Shown: positions 5,298 through 28,338 of the stretch, one piece after another
Position numbering within the stretch: the stretch's first letter is position 1
How the letters are laid out: each line of letters starts with the position of its first letter
Sequence record: PQ182779.1
Strand: one strand, 5' to 3'
Length of the DNA stretch: 64,000 bases
Position numbers and translations under genes: made by a program
Notes under the pieces: generated by a model
What the model saw: the letters and a program-made list of their open reading frames with translations, nothing else
Told to the model about the DNA's origin: nothing
Databases searched by the model: none

Positions 5298-6593
5298 TTA
5301 TTTCATTGCTTTTTTGGCCACGTTCAGCTGGGCTTCAGCCACACGGAAGAAGTGGTTGATGAATTGCATCAACGGTTTCGTGTAAGCTTTGATGTACGCC
5401 CGGTTAACGCGGTTAATCGCGGTTTGATACTGGGTGCTACTGATCCCGAATACGATAGAACTTGCCAAACCAAAGTCGGTGTGCGTAGTAAAGAAGTCAA
5501 CGTTAAACATAGTACCAGTCACTTTGGTACGGGAGAGACTTCCCATCGTCCCTTTGACCACCTGGCAAAGACGGCGCACAGATTCTTTGTTTACGCCGGT
5601 CATTTCAAAAGCGCGGCCGTCGGTGTTCCCGGCTAAATAGACATCCGGTACGGACTCGCCAATACTTTTTGAGACAGCGCGGAAGTCTTCGCTTTTTTCC
5701 AGTTTTTCGCCGTTAGAAATATAAATACCGCCAAACGCTTTACCATCGGTAAAAGTACTCTGGAACAGCGCGTCTAAAGCCTCAGCATTAGCGATGAACT
5801 TTTTCGCGAGATCGTTACGACTGTTTGCTTTGGCATCGCCACGGCCTAACGCGCTATCAAAAGTCTTCTGTACCAGGTTAACGAATTCATCATGCTTGGT
5901 CAGGACTTTCTGGGAATACGGGCCGGAGAGTTCGGCGGTTTTCTTTGCGATGGTCTCAAAACCGGAAACGGCTTTGTCAAACGTCGTTGCGAAACTGTTA
6001 TTGTCCCACGCAACGTAAACCGAGGAAGATTCACTGATAGGAACACTGTCTTTAAACTCTGCATCAGCCGCTTTCTTCTCGACGGAAGACAGCAGATTCT
6101 TCAGGGCTTCCAAACGAGAGAACAGTCCTTTCACGTATTTCTTGAAAGACTCGCCGGCGTTCTTGACTAACTGAACTGCGCCTTTCATGAAATTACTGAC
6201 GGTTTCGCCGAGCGCTTCGAGAGCAGGTTCAGACGCGCCTTTGATTTCAAATGCTTCCAGAGAAGGGATGACGGTTTCTACGGTTTCGCCGGTGCCGTCA
6301 ACTACCGCATCGGTCGCTTGTTCGATAAGCGCAATTTCAGCCGGAGTGGCGATACGATCTTCGCCTACGACTTCACTACTGATAAAATCTTTCAGGAGTT
6401 CACCGCGTTCGGATTTGTCATCGAGAATCGCAGATTCATCGAGTTGATCGACCACTTCACTGGTCAGCTCATAGGCTTCGAGGGCCAGTAAACCTAACTC
6501 ACCAGCGTCGCCTTCCGGGATATCGATAAACGCTTGGGCTTCCAAAGAGGGAGTAGAAGCAAGGGCTTCGAGTACTTTACGAGTATGTTTCAT
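5298..6593 (-). CDS. internal head (ejection-type) virion protein with protease-cleaved acidic propeptide
   Basis: Acidic N-terminus with repeated [AS]LEA sites matching phiKZ/SPN3US prohead-protease specificity (A/S/G-x-E); highly biased codon use. Confidence 0.7.
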   Translation of the reverse strand: MKHTRKVLEALASTPSLEAQAFIDIPEGDAGELGLLALEAYELTSEVVDQLDESAILDDKSERGELLKDFISSEVVGEDRIATPAEIALIEQATDAVVDGTGETVETVIPSLEAFEIKGASEPALEALGETVSNFMKGAVQLVKNAGESFKKYVKGLFSRLEALKNLLSSVEKKAADAEFKDSVPISESSSVYVAWDNNSFATTFDKAVSGFETIAKKTAELSGPYSQKVLTKHDEFVNLVQKTFDSALGRGDAKANSRNDLAKKFIANAEALDALFQSTFTDGKAFGGIYISNGEKLEKSEDFRAVSKSIGESVPDVYLAGNTDGRAFEMTGVNKESVRRLCQVVKGTMGSLSRTKVTGTMFNVDFFTTHTDFGLASSIVFGISSTQYQTAINRVNRAYIKAYTKPLMQFINHFFRVAEAQLNVAKKAMK

Positions 6594-10912: not shown

Positions 10913-10943
10913 AATTGGAGATGAAGCCATCTCCAATTTTTTT
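10913..10943 (+). terminator. intrinsic terminator
   Basis: AATTGGAGATG/CATCTCCAATT stem plus T-run. Confidence 0.8.
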
Positions 10944-10949
10944 AACATC

Positions 10950-10965
10950 TATATAGCTACAGTGA
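10950..10965 (+). promoter_or_regulatory. phage early promoter motif
   Basis: TATATAGC-TACA-GTGA followed by the hairpin + TAACTAAAC leader. Confidence 0.7.
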
Positions 10966-11024
10966 TTTAGGAAAGATAAAACCTTTCCGTAAATAAAATA
11001 ACTAAACCTATTGGAGTGCTATTA

Positions 11025-11435
11025 ATGTTACTGACTGCGAAAACTATCGAAAACGTACAAAAAGCTATTAATAAAAGTTCTTATACTGTTAAAGAGATTA
11101 AAGTCAAAGCTATTTATACCACACCAAAAATTTCGGTGGCGCTTTACATCTTAGACGGCGAATTGGTTGCTAGTCAGCTGTATCCTTTCAAAGGGGCTAA
11201 AATGTCAAATCTCATTTTAGATGCAGCGGCCTTCTGCGACTATTATATCTTAGAAGAGATTTATCGTGGCCTGGAAAAAGACGACACCGCAGAATTGATT
11301 GAGTCTTTATGGCCTTGTAACGATAAACGTAATGTCGTCGAGATCAGCTCCTTGAAAGAAAATCAAATTTCAAAGGAGTCGTTTAATAACCTCGCCAACA
11401 AATTCAACAACAACCATCATCGTCGCCGTAAATAA
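11025..11435 (+). CDS. hypothetical early protein
   Basis: SD GGAG 8 nt before ATG 11025. Confidence 0.7.
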   Translation: MLLTAKTIENVQKAINKSSYTVKEIKVKAIYTTPKISVALYILDGELVASQLYPFKGAKMSNLILDAAAFCDYYILEEIYRGLEKDDTAELIESLWPCNDKRNVVEISSLKENQISKESFNNLANKFNNNHHRRRK

Positions 11436-11446
11436 GAGAAACTAAA

Positions 11447-11818
11447 ATGAAACTACGCTTTACTTTAATAGGGATTGTCTTCTTTGCGGCGAATGCCTCT
11501 GCTCACTACTTCGGTCCAGTTAACCAAACTAACTCTATTGGCATGGACGGTTATTCTCAAATTGAGATGTACATCGACACGAAAGAATCCGGGGATTTTG
11601 TGTTTCGTGTCGGGAATAAGGTCATTGCAGATAAGAAAGGGATTCCTTACAAAAAATATGTTTTCGGCGGTGAAAGAGCAACCTTTCCGATGACCATCAA
11701 TAACAAATTTATCCAGCAGCACGATAACGGACAGAAATACGTCCCTATCTGCGCGATGCAGGTAATACCCAACGTGCAGTTCCAACCAGAGGTGTGCTTC
11801 AATGTCCATGTTGAATAA
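11447..11818 (+). CDS. secreted beta-rich protein, pilus-chaperone/assembly-like
   Basis: Sec signal peptide ending ANASA; beta-strand pattern; C-terminal Cys pair (PICA...EVC). Confidence 0.55.
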   Translation: MKLRFTLIGIVFFAANASAHYFGPVNQTNSIGMDGYSQIEMYIDTKESGDFVFRVGNKVIADKKGIPYKKYVFGGERATFPMTINNKFIQQHDNGQKYVPICAMQVIPNVQFQPEVCFNVHVE

Positions 11819-12206
11819 AGTCTTACTCTTTGCAGTTACACTGGCTTGTTCAACAATGGCTTTTGCCGATGCGCCTTACATCATGAACAACACAGCTGAA
11901 AATCGTGGCCGCGTACAGAACGGTGATATCAGCTGTGAGGTCAGCCGCCCGCAAGCAACGATTAACGTCGGGGCGTACGGAAATAATGGTAGTCAGTATC
12001 GTTATGCAGATAACGATAAAGGCGGGTATGTTAGTATAAGTATCCCCTTAGGCGGTGACGATAAGATGGCCGAAAGCTGCGAGCGGTTAGCTGATCTTAG
12101 TCGTCGCCAAAAAGAATTACAGATCCGTCGTTTAGAGATGGAAATGGAACGCATGGAACAGAATCAGCAAATGGATTCTCAACGTGCGATGCGTGTCGAT
12201 CCGTAA
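11802..12206 (+). CDS. secreted protein with beta-hairpin core and C-terminal coiled coil
   Basis: Signal peptide ending MAFA; GDISCE...GAYG...GGYVSISIPLG...CERL followed by heptad repeats. Confidence 0.6.
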   Translation: MSMLNKVLLFAVTLACSTMAFADAPYIMNNTAENRGRVQNGDISCEVSRPQATINVGAYGNNGSQYRYADNDKGGYVSISIPLGGDDKMAESCERLADLSRRQKELQIRRLEMEMERMEQNQQMDSQRAMRVDP

Positions 12207-12250
12207 GTTGTAGTAAAAAACCTTAACTCAATCTCTCTTTTGGAAAACAA

Positions 12251-12745
12251 ATGAAAAACGTAAAATTCGCTGTGGCTGCTCTGGTACTGTCTCTGTCTTC
12301 TACTGCGTTCGCTGCGCAGGAAATGGTGTGGGATGCAGAATACACCCAAACTCAAATGTCATGTGGGATCGATTTTGCCAATGGTCAGCAGACCGGCGGG
12401 ATCCTTCTGAAAGGCGAGCAAGGTACCGATAATCAAAAGGCAGTTAACTTCGTACTGAAAAGTAACACCGCGCGCCAGAGCTGGAAACTGACCGAAGCCA
12501 AACTGACCCAAAACACCGGGCGCTTCGCCTTCGCTGATAACCTCATGACCATCAGCGATCGTTCGCAAACTTCCGTATTCATCAACAACCAGGAATACGC
12601 GTGGTCTGCCGCTGCTCAAAATCAGCAGATCCAGGGTAACAGCAAAACGCTGGCTATCGCGCCGAAAATCAATCTCGACGCACAAGAGATGCCGCTGGGC
12701 ACTACTCACATCCAGGGCAAAGTTGTCCTGACCTGCGAAAACTAA
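12251..12745 (+). CDS. fimbrial/pilin-like secreted subunit
   Basis: Signal peptide ending TAFA; N-terminal Cys (QMSCGI); terminal strand MPLGTTHIQGKVVLTCEN like the P.G.Y...V..TC end of fimbrial subunits; high-expression codon bias. Confidence 0.55.
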   Translation: MKNVKFAVAALVLSLSSTAFAAQEMVWDAEYTQTQMSCGIDFANGQQTGGILLKGEQGTDNQKAVNFVLKSNTARQSWKLTEAKLTQNTGRFAFADNLMTISDRSQTSVFINNQEYAWSAAAQNQQIQGNSKTLAIAPKINLDAQEMPLGTTHIQGKVVLTCEN

Positions 12746-12753
12746 TCCACTCC

Positions 12754-12780
12754 CGTCTCCGGTTCTCTGAACCGGAGACG
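12754..12780 (+). terminator. strong hairpin (terminator or mRNA-stabilising stem)
   Basis: 12-bp stem CGTCTCCGGTTC/GAACCGGAGACG; weak U-tract. Confidence 0.6.
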
Positions 12781-12812
12781 TTCTAAAACGTTAACGTTAA
12801 GGAAGATATAAA

Positions 12813-13232
12813 ATGTTTTACTCGCTGACCCTACTTTCCAAAATACTCTCTTTGTTCTCCTGCTTCGCCCTGGCTATTCTCATTATTGCGAAAATCCCGT
12901 TATTAGAGGATGCAGTAATTTACTGGGTGATCACGTTGATCACAATACGCTTACTCTGGCTGGGTTTCCAGTTCTTCTCCTTCCCTGACCTCTCAAGAAT
13001 ATCGCTGACGCCAGAGAACAAAAGTAAACTTCGCCAAAAAATAGAGAAGCATCTGACTTTCACTGGCGGGATGAACGTTACGCTGCGTTTAATCGTGGCT
13101 GTGGTGCTATTCATTCTGCTCTGCGTTCACCATGAGTACTTATTAGGTATTCTGTCTATCGCTACTTTCTTTGTCCGAATGTTTTTCGAGATTGAAGCGA
13201 TAATCGAAATTGAATCGCTAAAACGCGTATAA
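12813..13232 (+). CDS. multi-pass membrane protein (about 4 TM)
   Basis: SD AAGGAAG; four hydrophobic segments. Confidence 0.7.
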   Translation: MFYSLTLLSKILSLFSCFALAILIIAKIPLLEDAVIYWVITLITIRLLWLGFQFFSFPDLSRISLTPENKSKLRQKIEKHLTFTGGMNVTLRLIVAVVLFILLCVHHEYLLGILSIATFFVRMFFEIEAIIEIESLKRV

Positions 13233-13266
13233 AAAAGAGAGGGCGTTTGCCCTCTCTTTTTTTTTG
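13231..13266. terminator. bidirectional intrinsic terminator
   Basis: A-run + GAGAGGGC/GCCCTCTC + T-run between convergent genes. Confidence 0.85.
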
Positions 13267-13271
13267 TTTCT

Positions 13272-13841
13272 TTACGGCGTTTGGAACGGGTTGATCAGAA
13301 ATGCAAACTGGTATTTCTCAAATCCCTCTGCTTTCAGTTTCCATCCAATGTAAACCTTAAACCGGCGTTTCTTCACGTGGTCGTCACGCATGAAGTAGAC
13401 CATCCAGTAATGGGACTTATAGGTGCCTTTAACATCAAACCCTTTACCCTCTAAAACAGGTTGACGGAATTTGTCTTTTGGTGCACCTAACACGCTAATA
13501 GAAAAACCGTACAATGGATTGCGGTATAACCAAAAGACACGGGCGACGTAAGTTTGCGCCCATTCAGGGAGTATCTTTACCCAGAGAGAGTGTTTCTCTT
13601 TCCAACCGGAATCCCCATCTAAACTATTGTCCGGTGTGTCGAACCATTTCAGCCATTTCGGTAGTTTCCCGGCCTTCGTCGCAAAGGCCGGTAGAAACGG
13701 TGTGACAATGACGCAAATGATCAACGCTGCGAAGTAGATCAATAAAAAACTCAGCCAATGCAAGAAGCCCAATAACGGAACAGGATGTCCCCAAAGCGTA
13801 ATTTTCTTCATCGTATTCAATCCCCAAGGTAGATGTTTCAT
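13272..13841 (-). CDS. conserved phage membrane-associated protein (WF.TPDN.LDGD.GW family)
   Basis: N-terminal TM helix; WLKWFDTPDNSLDGDSGW and WLYRNP.YGF motifs. Confidence 0.7.
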   Translation of the reverse strand: MKHLPWGLNTMKKITLWGHPVPLLGFLHWLSFLLIYFAALIICVIVTPFLPAFATKAGKLPKWLKWFDTPDNSLDGDSGWKEKHSLWVKILPEWAQTYVARVFWLYRNPLYGFSISVLGAPKDKFRQPVLEGKGFDVKGTYKSHYWMVYFMRDDHVKKRRFKVYIGWKLKAEGFEKYQFAFLINPFQTP

Positions 13842-13858
13842 AAAAACTTCAATAAATC

Positions 13859-13933
13859 GAAATGCAGTTTTTTTGATGTATATATTGCTAAGGTGAAATA
13901 GGAAAGGAAAAAGTCTTTTCCAAATAACTAAAC
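13859..13933 (+). repeat. about 75-bp promoter/leader module, near-identical to 34815-34888
   Basis: GAAATGCAGTTTTTTTGATGTATATAT.GC.AAGGTGAA..AGGAAAGG...AATAACTAAAC present at both loci. Confidence 0.85.
13881..13896 (+). promoter_or_regulatory. phage early promoter motif
   Basis: TATATTGC-TAAG-GTGA. Confidence 0.75.
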
Positions 13934-13952
13934 CAATAAGAGGTAAAGTAAA

Positions 13953-14111
13953 ATGAAAGAAAGTATACTTTTATTAATTGTCACTCTCATTGCATTGCTT
14001 TGTTTCGGCGTATCGTTACCGATGGCCATCCTTTACGGGTTCGTCTCTGTGCTCGTCTGGTATATTGTTTCGCCGTTCGCTCTGTTAGTCTCCGTTACCT
14101 ATTTATCCTAA
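13953..14111 (+). CDS. 52-aa hydrophobic membrane peptide (not in ORF track)
   Basis: SD GAGG; MKESILLLIVTLIALLCFGVSLPMAILYGFVSVLVWYIVSPFALLVSVTYLS*. Confidence 0.75.
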   Translation: MKESILLLIVTLIALLCFGVSLPMAILYGFVSVLVWYIVSPFALLVSVTYLS

Positions 14112-14126
14112 GAGGGAGAAATCATC

Positions 14127-14297
14127 ATGTCTTACTTCATCACGTTAATTCTCACTCTGCTGATCTGCACCTTCTTTGAACTGACTATCATCCCAGCAGT
14201 TCTGGTAGCGTTCGCCGCGGGAGTTATTGGAGCGCTTTCAGAAGAGCAGTTTAACAAAGCCAATTTCAACGCAACTCATTCACCGGAGGCGTTGTAA
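14127..14297 (+). CDS. 56-aa membrane peptide (not in ORF track)
   Basis: SD GAGGGAG; MSYFITLILTLLICTFFELTIIPAVLVAFAAGVIGALSEEQFNKANFNATHSPEAL*. Confidence 0.75.
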   Translation: MSYFITLILTLLICTFFELTIIPAVLVAFAAGVIGALSEEQFNKANFNATHSPEAL

Positions 14298-14416
14298 TGA
14301 AAACGTCTTTCGTGGTACTGGGGATTATTTCCTCGGTACTTATTCTTGACCTGGCTTTACTCCCGGCCTGCGTTTTCGCCGTCGCCGTAGGGGGTTACTT
14401 AAAAGCGGTCAAATAG
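14297..14416 (+). CDS. 39-aa membrane peptide (not in ORF track)
   Basis: SD GGAGG, TAATG coupling; MKTSFVVLGIISSVLILDLALLPACVFAVAVGGYLKAVK*. Confidence 0.7.
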   Translation: MKTSFVVLGIISSVLILDLALLPACVFAVAVGGYLKAVK

Positions 14417-14496
14417 TAGTAAGCGCTGCCTCTCAACAGCGTGAGTAGTGCACTCTCACCCGTAGTTAAATTATTCAATTCAAAAGGTAAATTATC

Positions 14497-14784
14497 ATGG
14501 AAAAAATCAAAGCGTTCTTCTCTTTCTCTTTCACTGAGAAAACCAAAGCAATCTTTGCTTTCATCACCGACACCCTGATCGTTGCCGCGCTGGCAATCTT
14601 CGCCGCGTTCTGCATGGCTACTGCCATGGAAGTGGCGGCCTACGCTTTTGCGGTCTTGGTTATCTTCAGCTATATTCACGATAGCTACAACAACCTCAAA
14701 ACCGTCATTTCTCCTGCCACTGACGGCGAGACTGCGACTGACGCAGGCGAGACCGACGTCTCTGACGCAGCGGTAACCGCTTAA
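14497..14784 (+). CDS. 2-TM membrane protein with acidic tail
   Basis: SD AAAGG; long hydrophobic core; D/E/T-rich C-terminus. Confidence 0.75.
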   Translation: MEKIKAFFSFSFTEKTKAIFAFITDTLIVAALAIFAAFCMATAMEVAAYAFAVLVIFSYIHDSYNNLKTVISPATDGETATDAGETDVSDAAVTA

Positions 14785-16171: not shown

Positions 16172-16642
16172 ATGAAAAAATTCATTGCTGCTTCACTCAT
16201 CGCCCTGTCCTCTATCGCGTCCTTCAATGTCATGGCCATCGTCAATAATTGGACCGAATCTTATCAGCAGGGTACTCTGGAATTCTACACCGAAAACAGC
16301 GACGGTTTTTCGCTCGCATTCTCTTGCCGCGATACTGGCGATCAATGGCCGGTTCAAGCGCTGTTTCTGAACGGTACTAACGGCAACTCGCTTTCCAGCG
16401 ATGATGATCGCTACGCGCTGGTTATCGAAATGGGCGGTCAGAAGTACCAGATGATCTCTCCTGTTTCTACCGTTGGGGCAAGTAACTGGCGCTTGTTCTT
16501 CGAAGGCGTTAAGAAAACCAAAGCAAAAACCGTTAAGGTTTACGTACAAGATCATCCAGAGACCTTCGTTGTTTTCTCAACTAACGGGCTCAAGAAAATC
16601 GTCGCCGAAAATAAAGGCGGTAACTGCTTCTTTCTCGGCTAA
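16172..16642 (+). CDS. secreted/periplasmic beta-rich protein
   Basis: Signal peptide MKKFIAASLIALSSIASFNVMA; two Cys. Confidence 0.75.
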   Translation: MKKFIAASLIALSSIASFNVMAIVNNWTESYQQGTLEFYTENSDGFSLAFSCRDTGDQWPVQALFLNGTNGNSLSSDDDRYALVIEMGGQKYQMISPVSTVGASNWRLFFEGVKKTKAKTVKVYVQDHPETFVVFSTNGLKKIVAENKGGNCFFLG

Positions 16643-18077: not shown

Positions 18078-18425
18078 ATGAAAAAGATTACTTTGATGGC
18101 CATCGCTCTACTGTTCACTGCTACGACCGCCCAAGCTGCGCCGAATAGCGCTTGTATCGATCGCGTCAACACTGAGGTTAAAAACGCGGTGACGTTGTTC
18201 CCTGGCGTTAACCCTAAAACCGTTCATGTCACCTTTATGCGTGCTAAGCCTTCTTCGCTTTCTGCCATGGAAGGTGAGGCGCAGACGCCAGGGTATAAAG
18301 TTTACAGCGCGGTCTCTTTCACGCAGAAAAAGGAAACCGTTCGTTGGTTGAATGAAAGCGGTGTTGTTTTTGACGGAGATGACACTTGTTCTGTACTTTA
18401 CACTAATCTGGATGTCGCGGGATGA
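18078..18425 (+). CDS. secreted/periplasmic protein
   Basis: SD AGGAG; signal peptide ending TAQA; two Cys. Confidence 0.75.
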   Translation: MKKITLMAIALLFTATTAQAAPNSACIDRVNTEVKNAVTLFPGVNPKTVHVTFMRAKPSSLSAMEGEAQTPGYKVYSAVSFTQKKETVRWLNESGVVFDGDDTCSVLYTNLDVAG

Positions 18426-24832: not shown

Positions 24833-25771
24833 ATGTTTAAACACAGTTTTGACACCTCAGCCGGCAGTTCTATTTTTCCTGCGAGTCTACCCGGGAAGAT
24901 GTTGGTGGCGAACGCAGAAGGTGCATTAACCCCAATTAACCACTTTAAAGGGCTGTTCGCGGTACTGGAGAAAACCCCAGAGTTGGAAGCCATTCCTGTC
25001 TTTCGTCATCCCCTTTCTCAAGAAGTTCAAAGTATACCGTATACATATATTGATCTTCGCCCTTACCGCGGGACGTTAAAATTAAATGCAGACGGTACCA
25101 CAGACTTTGTTAATGAAGGTTCTGTCGGGATCATTTTCCGCCGTGCTGTTCTGGAGATGGCTTGGTCGGAAGGGAATATCGATGCGTTCTATTTCAACGT
25201 TGATGTCCCGTTGGCAATCTTTGCTAAGTGGTTAACTGGGCTGCTCAAAAACAAACTGAACCTGAATGAGCTGGTTGCAGAAAAACTCAAAGCAATCACT
25301 GCTTATTATTACTACTGCTTACACTGCGATGTGAAAGACTTTAACGATCGTCGTCACGAGGTCTTCTGCGTGAAGATCAGTCGCATCCTGAATATCCCTT
25401 ATCAGAAACTGGATCTGTGGTTGCGTCCGGTTGGCTACATGGCGAACCTCGATGACTATTGCAAAGCGTTAGCTGAATTCGGTGAGAGCTTATCACTGAA
25501 ACGAATTGACAAACGCATTCTCTGGACGTTGACATCAACTAGCTGGTTTGGTAGTTCAGAAGTCCGTGAGCAATTGGCCGTGGCGCTCGAATACCCACCG
25601 ATGTTTATTGCCATGATTTATTCAGCGTGTGCCGGTGAAAAGCAATACCGTAAAGCATGGTTAACGCAGTTGATTGACCGTGAAGGTCGTAATCTGAAAA
25701 CCGACGATTTCGTTGCTCGTGTTAACGACCTGATCGCATTGACGGCGAATCATCACGAGAAAACTTATTAA
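24833..25771 (+). CDS. virion structural protein (positional equivalent of phiKZ gp28)
   Basis: Divergent from the sheath gene, first of the three genes before the terminase. Confidence 0.6.
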   Translation: MFKHSFDTSAGSSIFPASLPGKMLVANAEGALTPINHFKGLFAVLEKTPELEAIPVFRHPLSQEVQSIPYTYIDLRPYRGTLKLNADGTTDFVNEGSVGIIFRRAVLEMAWSEGNIDAFYFNVDVPLAIFAKWLTGLLKNKLNLNELVAEKLKAITAYYYYCLHCDVKDFNDRRHEVFCVKISRILNIPYQKLDLWLRPVGYMANLDDYCKALAEFGESLSLKRIDKRILWTLTSTSWFGSSEVREQLAVALEYPPMFIAMIYSACAGEKQYRKAWLTQLIDREGRNLKTDDFVARVNDLIALTANHHEKTY

Positions 25772-25779
25772 AGTAGAAG

Positions 25780-28338
25780 GTGCGTGTAATGAATTCCGTA
25801 ACCGAAAGTTTCCTTCTCGATCATGCACGCACGAATTTGTGGTGTGCACCTATTCAGGATCGTCAGGTCATTCTCGATCTGACGCGAATCAGTCGAGACA
25901 GTGGTGCGAAAGTTTCCAGTACCATTCTCTGGGTTGATACCCCATTACCTACCGAAGGCGACGTCTATCATCTCTATCAGATCGGGGCAAACAGTCGTTG
26001 GCGTACAGGTCTCCCTGACGTTCGCGGAAAATGGATGGCGCTGGGACCTTACAGCGAAGCGACTGCGCTGATCATTGACCTCTATCTGGAAACGGGCGTT
26101 AAACTCCCGCTCTTTAGCAGTTACGTTCTTCGTACCTACGACGACAATTTGATCATTGCGATTAAAGAGCACGCTATCTTTGGCGAGTTAAGTGAAAAGA
26201 AAGCGTATCTCAGAATTTACAACAACGCCTTTTTCCGTTCAGAGCGAAGTAATAACATCGGTCAGAAAGTGGCTTATATCGGCAGAGAGATTACTAAGCA
26301 AACTGATATCGCTGCGTTTATTAATGGGTTGCGGCCGCTGCAAACCTTAACCGGTGTAACCAATATTTACCATAATGGCGTGTGGAAGCCGGAAATCAAA
26401 TCGACTGATATTTCCATTGGTGACCTGGTTGAGGCAGTTTACGACGCCGCGGTGAGTCACGTAGTGGACTTCAAAGTCTCGTCGCTGTACGACTATACGT
26501 CGACGTTAGACAATCTGAAGAAGTATCTGCTGCACCCGAGTAAAAATACGCACGATAACGAAATCTATTACGTCGACGATATCGATTTGTTCATGTACAA
26601 AGTCGGCGCGAATGATTCGGTTTCAGGTCGCTATTATCACCGCAATAAAGAGAACAGTCTACGTAACGTAACTCACGCCGATTACAGTATTCCGACGGGT
26701 TATGTTTCGGCTTATCTGAATGATGGCTGGACAACGTACGACAACCTTTATATTCGTCTTCATCTTCGTGAGTCCGGTTTTAAACGCCCTCTCATCGACG
26801 AGGTGAATCGCATTGAAACACTTTACCGTTTAAGCGACACTGACATTCTCAGAGCAATGATTGGACTCGATTCCACGTTGGCTGAGTGGCGTGTAGAGAA
26901 CCTGGAAAACTCTCTTTATACGGCGATCATGCGAAACTTCTGGGGCTCGTTTACAGCGACGGACGTCATCAACGCTTACGGCTACAACGCATTAGCAAAA
27001 CTCTTTGCGTTAAACCCAACGAAAGTGACGCCTTCCTCGAACGGCGGTTTTGTCGATCTACCCTTTGGACTCTCGCTCTGTTCTACGCTCTTTGAGTACG
27101 ACGAAGACGGGGTGTTGTTGGGCTGGAATCAGCACGGTTACTCGGAACGCTACTTCGTGAAGAATGAGCGGGCAGCGCTGGTTGAGGGGTTCATGGGGTG
27201 GGGTAAGAAAGCCATTACCTGGTCGCCCAGTAACAACAACTACACGCTGGACGATAAGTACCAATACTACTTCTTTAAAGCGGCGATCAACAAAGGAGTT
27301 GTTTCCGACGTCTGGGAACCGGCCGTAGAAGGGACGGATTACACGGTCTTAAATAATGTCGTCACGTGGATTCACGTCAAGGCCAGAAACATGGGCCTGA
27401 TCCTCAGTAGCTCTGAGGCGCTTGTATACGATCAGGTTGTAGGGAGTTCGGACGGGATCTTCCGCTTTACACTGACCTACGGTAAGACGCTCGGGACGAT
27501 TCTTCCTATTCGGCCACAACAACTGCGCGTGTGGATGAATGGTCATCCGCTGATTGAAGGGCTCGACTATATCCTGGATGGAAATAAAGGAACGGTCATC
27601 ACCAATCGTTACTACGATGAAACGTTAGGCAATAGTCAAAACTTTACCTTTGCCTGTTTAGGTTGGGAAACACCAAGCGCGAAGTACAAAAGACCGCTGA
27701 ATATCGGATTCGTAGATCACGGTTATGTCAGTGTGAACGGTACGTTTGATATTCGTGACGACAAGGTTATACGTACGATTATTGACGGAAAAGTGGTTGA
27801 CCCTTCAACAGTGCCGTTTATTGAAGACGCTGACGAAAAACAAATCCCGTTACTCCCTAACGGCTTACCTTACTGCGAAGAGACGGTTTTCGTTCCGCTG
27901 TACGGGATATCGACGAATGCGAACGCTGAGTTGATTCAGATGGGTGCAGAGAGCGATAAGCGTGTCAGTGACTACATGACGTTGAAGTACCCGGAGAAGG
28001 TCTTAACCGGCCCTAACCCAATCAGCGAACGTTATCGGATGTTCTCGGTGGTGATCACACGACTGATCTTCGATCTCGATAACGGAACCATCACTGAGCC
28101 GCTGAACATTAATGACAAAGTCTCCCTTGACCGTGTCATGAAGAACTACAGCGAGTACCTCGATATTGACCCGTGCCGAAGCGTCTGGAATACAAACTAC
28201 ATTTTCATTGACGCACACCCGTTTAGCTCCGCCGTCGCGGTAACCACAAAGCGCTGGAAGTTCCTTCAGAACGTCAATCAGTATTACCTGAATAATCGTC
28301 TGTCGCTTAATAACTATTTCTTTATAAAGGAATCCTGA
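25780..28338 (+). CDS. large virion/baseplate protein (phiKZ gp27-like)
   Basis: 852 aa; L..HA...WC.P.QD.Q start; synteny. Confidence 0.7.
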   Translation: MRVMNSVTESFLLDHARTNLWCAPIQDRQVILDLTRISRDSGAKVSSTILWVDTPLPTEGDVYHLYQIGANSRWRTGLPDVRGKWMALGPYSEATALIIDLYLETGVKLPLFSSYVLRTYDDNLIIAIKEHAIFGELSEKKAYLRIYNNAFFRSERSNNIGQKVAYIGREITKQTDIAAFINGLRPLQTLTGVTNIYHNGVWKPEIKSTDISIGDLVEAVYDAAVSHVVDFKVSSLYDYTSTLDNLKKYLLHPSKNTHDNEIYYVDDIDLFMYKVGANDSVSGRYYHRNKENSLRNVTHADYSIPTGYVSAYLNDGWTTYDNLYIRLHLRESGFKRPLIDEVNRIETLYRLSDTDILRAMIGLDSTLAEWRVENLENSLYTAIMRNFWGSFTATDVINAYGYNALAKLFALNPTKVTPSSNGGFVDLPFGLSLCSTLFEYDEDGVLLGWNQHGYSERYFVKNERAALVEGFMGWGKKAITWSPSNNNYTLDDKYQYYFFKAAINKGVVSDVWEPAVEGTDYTVLNNVVTWIHVKARNMGLILSSSEALVYDQVVGSSDGIFRFTLTYGKTLGTILPIRPQQLRVWMNGHPLIEGLDYILDGNKGTVITNRYYDETLGNSQNFTFACLGWETPSAKYKRPLNIGFVDHGYVSVNGTFDIRDDKVIRTIIDGKVVDPSTVPFIEDADEKQIPLLPNGLPYCEETVFVPLYGISTNANAELIQMGAESDKRVSDYMTLKYPEKVLTGPNPISERYRMFSVVITRLIFDLDNGTITEPLNINDKVSLDRVMKNYSEYLDIDPCRSVWNTNYIFIDAHPFSSAVAVTTKRWKFLQNVNQYYLNNRLSLNNYFFIKES

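Follow-up and report, generated by a model that had tools for sequence, protein, structure and literature searches.

A mobile cassette of three exported proteins, one with a predicted pilin-like fold, in large virulent phages

Does a run of three consecutive genes for small exported proteins in a jumbo phage encode a fiber-forming system, as was proposed when a sequence-only reading of the locus likened it to a minimal fimbrial system? To our knowledge, pilin-type subunits are not known from lytic phages, and the strand-exchange fibers of Gram-negative bacteria are thought to depend on an usher together with a two-domain chaperone of their own. The stretch of DNA analyzed here, referred to as the window, comprises bases 1–64000 of the nucleus-forming jumbo phage Klebsiella phage vB_kp_MJ359 (300.8 kb; hereafter MJ359), and the three genes, denoted P1, P2, and P3, are each annotated as "hypothetical protein" in the GenBank record PQ182779.1.

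Gene arrangement and boundaries of the cassette

The three open reading frames were found where the sequence-only reading had placed them, on the plus strand. They and the elements around them are as follows.

10913–10938: terminator-like hairpin with a T-run, directly before the promoter-like element
10936–11024, plus strand: promoter-like element or 5′ leader upstream of g022 (putative promoter role)
11025–11435, plus strand: g022, 136 aa, without a signal peptide; putatively cotranscribed with the trio and upstream of it
11447–11818, plus strand: P1 (g023), 123 aa
11802–12206, plus strand: P2 (g024), 134 aa
12251–12745, plus strand: P3 (g025), 164 aa
12754–12780, plus strand: terminator-like hairpin that closes the cassette (12-bp GC-rich stem, 3-nt loop)

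The promoter-like element contains a T-run, a TATATA box, GTGA..TAGGAAAG...CTTTCC, and AACTAAACC, and a second copy, which is ∼80% identical, is located at 13868–13952 upstream of g028. The element is also conserved upstream of the g022 homolog of phage FBKp24, where the FBKp24 record annotates a promoter. It probably marks the start of a transcription unit consisting of g022, P1, P2, and P3, and the cassettes of MJ359 and FBKp24 seem to rely on it. The g022 gene itself is outside the mobile cassette: its homolog adjoins the trio in the FBKp24 lineage only (60% identity), whereas Miami, Eowyn, pEp_SNUABM_01, and the metagenomic contigs have none at this place. No family match was found for g022.

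At the other end, the hairpin at 12754–12780 has a folding energy of −23.1 kcal/mol (z = −5.7), and none of 200 shuffled sequences folded as well, which agrees with the strong hairpin that had been noticed after P3. There is no clear T-run behind it in MJ359. A strong hairpin is located directly 3′ of P3 in all seven cassettes that were checked, several of which have T-runs, and the Miami record annotates a terminator directly after P3. A search of the cassette region against Rfam gave nothing above threshold. Inside the cassette, P1 and P2 overlap by 17 nt in MJ359, while their spacing across lineages varies from −17 to +10 nt, and a strong GAGG Shine–Dalgarno sequence for P2 is present inside the 3′ end of P1. 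This overlap or abutment of the two genes suggests that their translation could be coupled and lower in level.

Co-inheritance, constraint, and codon bias

The trio is present in the same gene order, between unrelated flanking genes, in nine phage lineages, which are MJ359, FBKp24, Miami, Eowyn, the Vequintavirinae phage pEp_SNUABM_01, where the cassette sits inside a tRNA cluster, and four metagenomic lineages. The proteins have similar sizes throughout (P1, 111–123 aa; P2, 125–135 aa; P3, 163–184 aa), and no fourth co-conserved gene was found in any lineage. The co-conservation of the three genes, whose absence had been named as a ground for refuting the fimbrial proposal, is strict. The cassette is at the same time sporadic, as it was detected in 24 of 50,697 phage records, and the isolated phages that carry it infect Klebsiella, Raoultella, and Erwinia. 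When the most divergent P3 (P0008) served as the query, the hits were again these 24 records, with no Vibrio phage among them. The similar trios that the sequence-only reading had mentioned for Vibrio and marine phages were not borne out by sequence; by structure, P3 matches a 157-aa viral protein in BFVD (E 2.6e-7). No relatives turned up when plasmids, genomes of E. coli, and a set of 185,579 bacterial species genomes were searched. Searches of Pfam, PHROGs, NCBIfam, PADLOC, and PDB sequences with all three proteins and their families yielded nothing useful beyond phrog_37374 for P2 and BhsA/YbiJ for the P3 signal peptide, and the literature search found no paper on the cassette.

These data show that the trio is a discrete, horizontally mobile accessory cassette of large virulent phages, which has the attributes of a moron: it is a self-contained unit, it has its own terminator, and it is inserted at nonhomologous sites in unrelated phages. 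One metagenomic cassette, L015, keeps P1 and P2 while almost all of P3 has been lost by a single deletion, so that P1 and P2 may be functional on their own, or the L015 copy may simply be in decay. Some metagenomic cassettes are located 0.2–3 kb from cell-wall hydrolase genes (Hydrolase_2, Peptidase_M15_4).

The comparison of substitutions (pN 0.10–0.40 versus pS 0.66–0.84), together with invariant cysteine pairs, indicates that the trio consists of real genes under constraint. The Fop value of P3 is 0.73, which is the second highest among the 83 window ORFs of at least 100 aa, with the nuclear shell protein alone being higher. P3 also has the highest Fop of the trio in all nine lineages, and the codon bias of P1 is lower than that of P3. 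The codon usage of a highly expressed gene, which the sequence-only reading had attributed to P3, was thus upheld.

Export signals and predicted structures

The features within the three proteins that are referred to below are the following.

11447–11503, plus strand: P1 signal peptide, residues 1–19
11802–11867, plus strand: P2 signal peptide, residues 1–22
11934–12080, plus strand: P2 strand region bracketed by the invariant Cys45 and Cys93, rich in Gly, Asn, and Tyr
12081–12203, plus strand: P2 predicted C-terminal amphipathic helix, ∼40 aa
12251–12313, plus strand: P3 signal peptide, residues 1–21
12314–12361, plus strand: P3 N-terminal extension, residues 22–37, with the core E-Q-V-W-D/N-A-x-I/Y
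12704–12739, plus strand: P3 C-terminal strand, residues 152–163

The signal peptides were read from the sequences and the family alignments by our own heuristic, which uses the n-h-c layout and the residues at positions −3 and −1. In each of the three proteins a basic n-region leads into a hydrophobic core, and the residues at −3/−1 are small (AxA-type), with the predicted cuts located between ASA and H in P1 (19/20), AFA and D in P2 (22/23), and AFA and A in P3 (21/22). The alanine at −1 is invariant or nearly so in the family alignments, and by the same approach an n-h-c signal peptide with no later membrane span was found in all three proteins in all nine lineages. Each mature protein contains exactly one cysteine pair, which is invariant in the nine lineages. 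These observations are in agreement with the Sec signal peptides and the paired cysteines that had been proposed for all three products. Only ∼5 of the ∼94 genes in the window encode soluble proteins with signal peptides, and so three exported genes in a row would be unlikely by chance; the recurrence of the three genes together in other phages shows that this grouping is not accidental. In a profile–profile comparison of the three families the signal peptides were aligned and nothing else, which indicates that P1, P2, and P3 are not paralogs. The P3 signal peptide alone matches BhsA/YbiJ, and it resembles those of abundant enterobacterial periplasmic proteins. The strict co-inheritance of the trio across unrelated large phages and the codon bias of P3, which is near that of the most abundant proteins of the phage, point to an unrecognized phage action on the host envelope. 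In MJ359, the neighborhood of the cassette is rich in genes for small membrane or exported proteins (g026–g031, g035, and g040); one of them, the exported and codon-optimized g035, was considered as a relative of P3 and proved to be unrelated.

The structure of P3 was predicted by AlphaFold2 (alignment A1) with pLDDT 80.8 and pTM 0.71, and the model has six main strands. When it was compared with the PDB using Foldseek, chaperone–usher pilins filled most of the top 50 matches (CFA/I, type 1, P, Saf, and Csu), including CfaB, FimA, SafA, CsuA/B, the PapG pilin domain, PapA, PapE, and FimG. These matches are weak, as the best E value is 2.5e-3 and none is at or below 1e-3, the TM scores of 0.36–0.46 are below the usual same-fold level, and the rmsd values are large. 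The proposal of a pilin-like subunit is therefore supported by the identity of the best solved-structure matches, and weakened by their low significance. TasA (8aur) was also among the matches, at rank 18, with E 0.14 and TM 0.20–0.26, which does not give P3 the TasA/camelysin fold of a major subunit. The search was able to discriminate, because P1, run in the same way, returned a different and generic set of structures. Fimbrial Pfam models matched none of the 14 P3 family members at E ≤ 10, and no match to P3 was found among PDB sequences. The C-terminal strand, P.G...IQGK.V.TC, is the most conserved long segment of P3 (0.83) and corresponds to the terminal P.G...V.LTC strand singled out by the sequence-only reading. 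The N-terminal extension is conserved as well as the core (0.67 versus 0.66–0.67), has no secondary structure in the monomer model, and shows a W-x-A-x-I/Y alternation. The Cys38–Cys162 pair is invariant, and this disulfide, connecting the N-terminal strand to the C-terminal strand, is placed unlike that of classical pilins.

We tentatively favor, at somewhat less than an even chance, a reading in which P3 is an abundant subunit of pilin fold that assembles by strand complementation with the aid of P1 and P2. During infection, this accessory module of large virulent Enterobacterales phages would send three proteins via Sec into the periplasm, with P3 as the abundant product, a pilin-type subunit with an incomplete Ig-like fold. 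Its N-terminal extension of 14–16 residues could fill the fold of a neighboring subunit by donor-strand complementation and exchange, giving rise to oligomers or fibers. No usher would be involved, and assembly would either stay periplasmic or take another route.

The P3 matches also include complexes that contain FimI and PapH (6swh, 2j2z), which draws attention to another explanation, namely that P3 is a pilin mimic entering the host chaperone–usher machinery (in Klebsiella, that of type 1, type 3, or further fimbriae), where it would cap or jam the pili like FimI and PapH, which are natural terminator subunits, while P1 and P2 would stabilize or deliver it. Since the cassette encodes no usher or true chaperone, classical assembly of P3 would need host parts, and the hosts of the isolated phages are rich in chaperone–usher fimbriae; the pilin-like fold of P3 and the similarity of its signal peptide to BhsA/YbiJ are also consistent with such a decoy. 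However, the recognition between chaperones and subunits is usually cognate, and no sequence similarity was found to any host fimbrial family. A simple decoy needs no two additional, strictly co-conserved exported proteins, and the cassette is carried also by L013, which is a phage contig of very low GC content (∼29%–33%). We consider the decoy quite unlikely.

The mature P1 protein has ∼104 aa, an invariant Cys102–Cys117 pair, and a conserved N terminus, H/F-x-F-G/W-P. A role of its N-terminal histidine in a histidine brace was rejected, because FBKp24 and L008 lineage proteins have Phe at this position, and L013 differs once more. The AlphaFold2 model of P1, obtained with the alignment of the window protein and the proteins returned by searches (A7), has pLDDT 84.4 and pTM 0.73, and contains strands at residues 20–24, 36–45, 49–55, 69–72, 77–85, 97–106, and 115–122. 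In this model P1 is a complete, single-domain, seven-strand Ig-like β sandwich, and the N-terminal strand belongs to its own fold. Thus, an Ig-like fold, which had been set as a test of the fimbrial proposal, was predicted for both P1 and P3. The Foldseek matches of P1 in the PDB were generic Ig/FnIII-like domains and the MSP domain, with FimC appearing only at rank 41, and no match had an E value below 1.8e-3. The sequence search gave just nine matches among 1.84 billion representatives, and a 1779-aa match (P0038) was rejected as a repeat-protein artifact. The description of P1 as a chaperone-like β protein agrees with the predicted β sandwich, but P1 is not a two-domain PapD-like chaperone, as it is a single domain with generic structural matches and the PapD Pfam model matched none of the 11 P1 family members even at E ≤ 10. 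In the assembly reading, P1 would be made in lower amounts and could act as a starter, cap, or holder for P3, comparable to TapA with TasA or to one domain of a pilus chaperone.

Ig-like folds are common and the structural matches are all weak, which is also compatible with P1, P2, and P3 being periplasmic binding proteins that form no fiber. P1 and P3 would then be generic binding modules, and the three proteins would form a soluble or membrane-associated complex on a target in the host envelope, such as a receptor, a porin, a cell-wall enzyme, or a DNA-entry route, to block superinfection or tune lysis, like other envelope-directed phage accessory genes. We judge this explanation to be rather unlikely, although several observations are in line with it: the small membrane and exported proteins encoded around the MJ359 cassette, the cell-wall hydrolase genes near some metagenomic cassettes, the retention of P1 and P2 without P3 in L015, and the moron-like character of a sporadic cassette with its own terminator. 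It leaves unexplained the conserved, unplaced N-terminal extension of P3 and its very high codon bias, and it does not account for the top matches of P3 being specifically pilins while those of P1 are generic. Moreover, no match to a known exclusion or defense family was found.

The region of P2 between Cys45 and Cys93 contains two amphipathic strands, QATINVGAYG and GGYVSISIPLG, the latter being residues 74–84. The tail that follows the second cysteine has no Pro and no Gly, and 0.50–0.70 of its heptad a/d positions are hydrophobic, compared to 0.20–0.34 elsewhere. These features reproduce the order of GGYVSISIPLG and a helical tail that had been read from the sequence, and by them P2 would consist of a strand region closed by a disulfide and, behind it, an amphipathic helix. 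All P2 homologs tested match phrog_37374, whose function is not known (best E 1.9e-10), and P2 has no Pfam or PDB relative. A match of one P2 homolog to OEP (E 0.0017) and of one member to phrog_1755 were set aside as helix or composition noise. P2 was also considered as a lipoprotein, which was rejected because the cysteine of its signal peptide is not conserved, and the idea of an Lpp-like C-terminal lysine was rejected as well, since P2 has a terminal Lys in just four of nine lineages. In the strand-complementation reading, P2 would oligomerize through its C-terminal helix, while its disulfide-closed hairpin domain could serve as an envelope anchor or platform; that this anchor is in the outer membrane, as had been suggested, is conceivable as speculation.

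A more far-reaching version, which we consider very improbable, makes the trio a complete usher-free export system, in which the P2 hairpins would form a barrel as an outer-membrane conduit or anchor, the P2 helices would form a stalk, and P3 fibers would be displayed at the surface of infected cells. This arrangement fits with the two amphipathic strands of P2, in which hydrophobic residues alternate and which a polar loop connects, and with the helix behind them, which would allow oligomerization, as well as with the fact that P2 is the most conserved protein of the trio between MJ359 and FBKp24 (86%). Nevertheless, P2 has no structural or sequence relative, no precedent was found for a barrel from so small, disulfide-based a hairpin, and nothing points to surface display.

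Returning to strand complementation by P3, its broadest form would be a phage-borne, self-sufficient, and usher-independent donor-strand-exchange system for Gram-negative cells, with periplasmic or surface fibers of P3 that are started by P1 and anchored or conducted by oligomers of P2. This is unlikely; if true, it would be a third route to strand-exchange fibers beside chaperone–usher pili and TasA/TapA, by which infected cells alter their envelope. In the reading favored above, the most plausible benefit for the phage would be remodeling of the envelope or exclusion of competing phages. If strand exchange proves correct, the cassette would offer a minimal system of three proteins in which this kind of assembly could be studied, and would give a role to three "hypothetical" families of Klebsiella and Erwinia phages now being weighed for therapy and biocontrol. 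Without it, the cassette is still a well-defined, mobile, envelope-directed unit, which merits annotation as such.

Comparison with known systems

Envelope-directed morons of T-even, T5-like, and lambdoid phages share with the cassette their accessory and sporadic nature, exported products, own terminators, and varied insertion sites. The known envelope morons, which act in superinfection exclusion or receptor blocking, are single small lipoproteins or inner-membrane proteins, and none known to us combines three proteins with a pilin-like one among them. No functional match of the trio was found in PADLOC or PHROG.

In chaperone–usher pili an incomplete Ig fold is completed by a donated strand (PMC4133393). 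Similarly to the subunits of these pili (class 5 CfaB, type 1 FimA), P3 is a Sec-exported protein of ∼15 kDa whose predicted fold is closest to pilins, with a conserved extension at the N terminus before its first core strand, and with a highly conserved C-terminal strand of alternating hydrophobic residues. The subunit gene is in both cases the most strongly expressed one, as judged for P3 by codon bias, and a small Ig-like partner, P1, is adjacent. On the other hand, the cassette has neither an outer-membrane usher nor a two-domain chaperone of the PapD/CfaA type, sequence similarity is not detectable, the disulfide is placed elsewhere, P2 has no counterpart, and the cassette is encoded by virulent phages only, with no bacterial homologs found. 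The absence of an usher gene, which the sequence-only reading had pointed out, extends over the cassette, its flanks, and the window, where the only usher-sized hypothetical ORF (849 aa) was identified as DUF7193. Lacking an usher, a two-domain chaperone of the PapD type, and any match to fimbrial, PapD, or usher Pfam models, the cassette is not a member of the chaperone–usher family. The observation made in the sequence-only reading was confirmed, and its interpretation as a minimal fimbrial system is partly supported: the Ig-like folds, the pilin-type matches of P3, and the co-conservation speak for it, while the missing usher, chaperone, and fimbrial Pfam matches and the weakness of the structural matches do not. 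To call the cassette a minimal fimbrial system says more than these data carry.

The TapA–SipW–TasA operon of Bacillus subtilis is also a three-gene unit, and its major protein is among the structural matches of P3. TasA and TapA form donor-strand fibers without an usher, and their assembly is started through strand complementation by an accessory protein that has a complete Ig fold and is present in low amounts (PMC9674648, PMC10151520). TasA is abundant and polymerizes by donor-strand exchange, and P3 is the most codon-optimized member of the cassette. In contrast to the cassette, this system is Gram-positive and extracellular, TasA is larger and its match to P3 is weak, and there is no sequence similarity. 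The signal peptidase SipW has no counterpart in the cassette, while P2, with its hairpin and helix, has no counterpart in the TasA operon. TapA and TasA may provide the closest analogy for the cassette.

Gene content and conservation of the cassette

The three adjacent genes P1, P2 and P3, each annotated as 'hypothetical protein' in the record, are followed by a hairpin:

11447–11818, + strand: P1, ORF of 123 aa (kpMJ359_023)
11802–12206, + strand: P2, ORF of 134 aa (kpMJ359_024)
12251–12745, + strand: P3, ORF of 164 aa (kpMJ359_025)
12754–12780, 3′ of P3: hairpin with a 12-bp stem (−23.1 kcal/mol, z −5.7)

The sequences and family alignments showed that the N-termini of all three proteins consist of a basic n-region followed by a hydrophobic core and a cut site of the A-x-A type, with predicted signal-peptide cleavage between ASA and H in P1, AFA and D in P2, and AFA and A in P3. 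The alanine at position −1 shows little or no variation in any of the three families, and each mature protein contains a single Cys pair, which is invariant in nine lineages. These data bear out the sequence-only reading, which had described three consecutive genes with signal peptides and paired cysteines. Such a run is not expected by chance, because a crude scan of the whole window yielded only some five soluble proteins with a signal peptide. The P2 protein carries the motif GGYVSISIPLG, as that reading had noticed, and its last ~40 residues, in the part proposed as a coiled coil, lack Pro and Gly and have a moderate heptad pattern. The C-terminus of P3 is formed by the conserved strand P.G.T.IQGK.V.TC, which agrees with the terminal strand pointed out before. 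The codon-optimality measure Fop, calculated with an E. coli optimal-codon set, was 0.73 for P3 versus 0.52 on average across the window (sd 0.08), and only the nuclear shell protein had a higher value; hence, the claimed codon bias of a highly expressed gene was found together with the strong hairpin after it. The highest Fop within the trio belonged to P3 in nine of nine lineages, as would be expected of a major subunit accompanied by two minor proteins.

A tblastn search of 50,697 phage records showed that P1, P2 and P3 each matched the same 21–24 records, with the genes adjacent and in unchanged order in every lineage, so the proposed test of neighborhood conservation revealed a co-conserved trio. 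The lineages of isolated phages were the MJ359/KpLz group, FBKp24/Centimanus, a group including Miami, YC1 and KPN8 (253 kb), Eowyn (265 kb), and the Erwinia phage pEp_SNUABM_01 (Vequintavirinae, 147 kb). In the last of these the trio (locus L003, 3655–4878) is located in the middle of a tRNA cluster, between tRNA-Arg and tRNA-Cys; tRNA clusters are typical landing sites of mobile accessory genes. Four further complete cassettes were found on metagenomic phage contigs (L007, L008, L013 and L014), and a tenth, degenerate copy (L015, ENA ERZ28614411) has intact P1 and P2, but a single deletion has taken nearly all of P3. Immediately 5′ of this degenerate copy is a gene for a cell-wall hydrolase (Hydrolase_2).

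Across lineages the proteins have 111–123 (P1), 125–135 (P2) and 163–184 (P3) aa, the P1 and P2 genes overlap or abut, and a strong hairpin closes all seven cassettes checked. The flanking genes are common to MJ359 and FBKp24 only. Pairwise identities of 18–60%, 32–86% and 36–73% for P1, P2 and P3, respectively, correlate between genes, with pN of 0.10–0.40 and saturated synonymous sites. Searches of plasmids, E. coli genomes and 185,579 bacterial species genomes revealed no relatives, and the families are small (13, 6 and 17 clusters for the three proteins among 5.8 billion proteins; nine hits of the P1 profile in 1.84 billion representatives). The trio is a discrete, mobile cassette, of which literature searches turned up no description. 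Although OR529409.1 (Stenotrophomonas phage BUCTxx100) bears a Stenotrophomonas host label, the identities of its three cassette proteins to the MJ359 queries equal those seen for the group of Klebsiella phage Miami, and the label may deserve checking.

Transcription context and neighboring genes

A shared element precedes both g022, the gene directly upstream of P1, and g028:

10936–11024, + strand: upstream element of ~85 nt, 5′ of g022
13868–13952, + strand: second copy, 5′ of g028, ~80% identical to the g022 copy

The element contains a T-run, a TATATA box, GTGA..TAGGAAAG..CTTTCC and AACTAAACC, and its core 14-mer occurs without mismatches at only these two sites in the window. A terminator-like hairpin precedes the g022 copy. 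In FBKp24 the element is conserved 5′ of the homologue of g022, and the annotation lists a promoter there. The two copies probably represent a phage promoter with a 5′ leader common to the g022–g025 and g028–g031 units, and the transcription unit in MJ359 is probably g022-P1-P2-P3, although g022 is outside the mobile cassette.

Genes for small predicted membrane proteins form a run immediately 3′ of the cassette (12813–14784). They comprise g026, whose 139-aa product has several hydrophobic spans, the minus-strand g027 (DUF7338, E 2.8e-43) and the very hydrophobic g028–g031 (39–95 aa). With this run beside the cassette, the 11–18 kb region is dominated by envelope-directed products. Between the convergent g026 and g027 there is a strong bidirectional terminator-like hairpin of 14 bp (13231–13262) with A-runs and T-runs on either side, to which every sub-threshold Rfam sRNA match in this region can be attributed. 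The plus strand also encodes g035 (16172–16642, 156 aa, Fop 0.68) and g040 (18078–18425, 115 aa), which are likewise soluble proteins with a signal peptide and contain two Cys each. Homologues of g035 occur in the Serratia jumbo phages Moabite, 2050HW and Yaphecito, as 'adhesin' or 'putative adhesin' in some records; g035 is unrelated to P3.

The window is bases 1–64000 of the 300,816-bp genome of Klebsiella phage vB_kp_MJ359 (PQ182779.1), to which positions 11000–13300 are 100% identical at unchanged coordinates. This genome is annotated with PhuZ tubulin, nuclear shell protein and multisubunit RNA polymerase, which identifies MJ359 as a nucleus-forming jumbo phage, as its relative FBKp24 has been described (bioRxiv 10.1101/2021.03.02.433402). 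A 312-aa 'hypothetical' protein (24833–25771, +) belongs to the PhiKZ vertex-binding protein gp28 family (Pfam, E 3.9e-89), and the minus-strand gene at 5298–6593 matches phiKZ-like internal head proteins.

Predicted folds and comparison with known fiber systems

No relatives of P1, P2 or P3 were found in Pfam, NCBIfam, PADLOC or PDB sequences, while P2 homologues match phrog_37374, a PHROG of unknown function. The AlphaFold2 model of P3 (14-sequence alignment, pLDDT 80.8, pTM 0.71) has an all-beta core of six main strands, with residues 1–37 lacking secondary structure. Its best Foldseek match in the PDB was CfaB (E 2.5e-3, TM 0.42–0.46; none reached E ≤ 1e-3), followed by FimA, SafA, CsuA/B, the PapG pilin domain, FimF/G, PapA, PapE, PapH and CupB6; most of the 50 best matches were pilins, and the TasA fiber ranked 18th. 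Among predicted viral structures a 157-aa protein was matched (E 2.6e-7, TM 0.54–0.56, 17% identity). Such pilin resemblance could also be that of a decoy for host pili, which we consider improbable.

The P1 model (pLDDT 84.4), based on 11 sequences including divergent homologues from a profile search of representatives, is a seven-strand sandwich. Its PDB matches, all at E 2e-3 to 8e-3, were generic Ig/FnIII-like domains (GH3 C-terminal domain, Spo0M, complement MG domain, Kir cytoplasmic domain, VAP MSP domain), with FimC only at rank 41. Hence, both modeled folds are Ig-like, and P3 looks specifically pilin-like, but P1, which had been proposed as chaperone-like, does not look specifically so. 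Alternatively, the exported proteins could constitute a periplasmic effector complex that forms no fiber, which is rather unlikely.

In the monomer model of P3, mature residues 1 to 14–16 (core E-Q-V-W-D/N-A-x-I/Y-T-N) are unplaced, and they are as conserved as the protein core; among the long segments, the C-terminal strand has the highest conservation. A donor strand and an acceptor edge would look like this, which is not proof of these roles. We tentatively propose that P3 would be assembled by strand complementation; fiber formation, as well as any biological role of the cassette, is what we infer. The cassette can be seen as donor-strand type subunits borne on a mobile module of virulent phages.

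Three components define the chaperone–usher pathway: a subunit that polymerizes, a chaperone with two domains, and an usher (PMC4133393). The latter two are absent from the cassette; the only usher-sized ORF of unknown function in the window (25789–28338, +, 849 aa, annotated 'hypothetical') is a full-length DUF7193 protein (Pfam, 1025 bits), in agreement with the earlier statement that there is no usher gene. Thus, what stands of the 'minimal fimbrial system' suggested earlier is a co-conserved gene set with a pilin-like fold and an Ig-like partner, while membership in the chaperone–usher pathway fails on two defining features. In the P2 sequence, the invariant Cys pair encloses two amphipathic strands, and an amphipathic helix follows; that P2 serves as the conduit of a complete usher-free export system is very unlikely. 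For the strand-complementation model, a closer working analogy than the chaperone–usher pathway is the TasA/TapA system of Bacillus subtilis, where TasA builds fibers through usher-free donor-strand exchange, and the scarce TapA, which has a complete Ig fold, starts the assembly by strand complementation (PMC9674648, PMC10151520).
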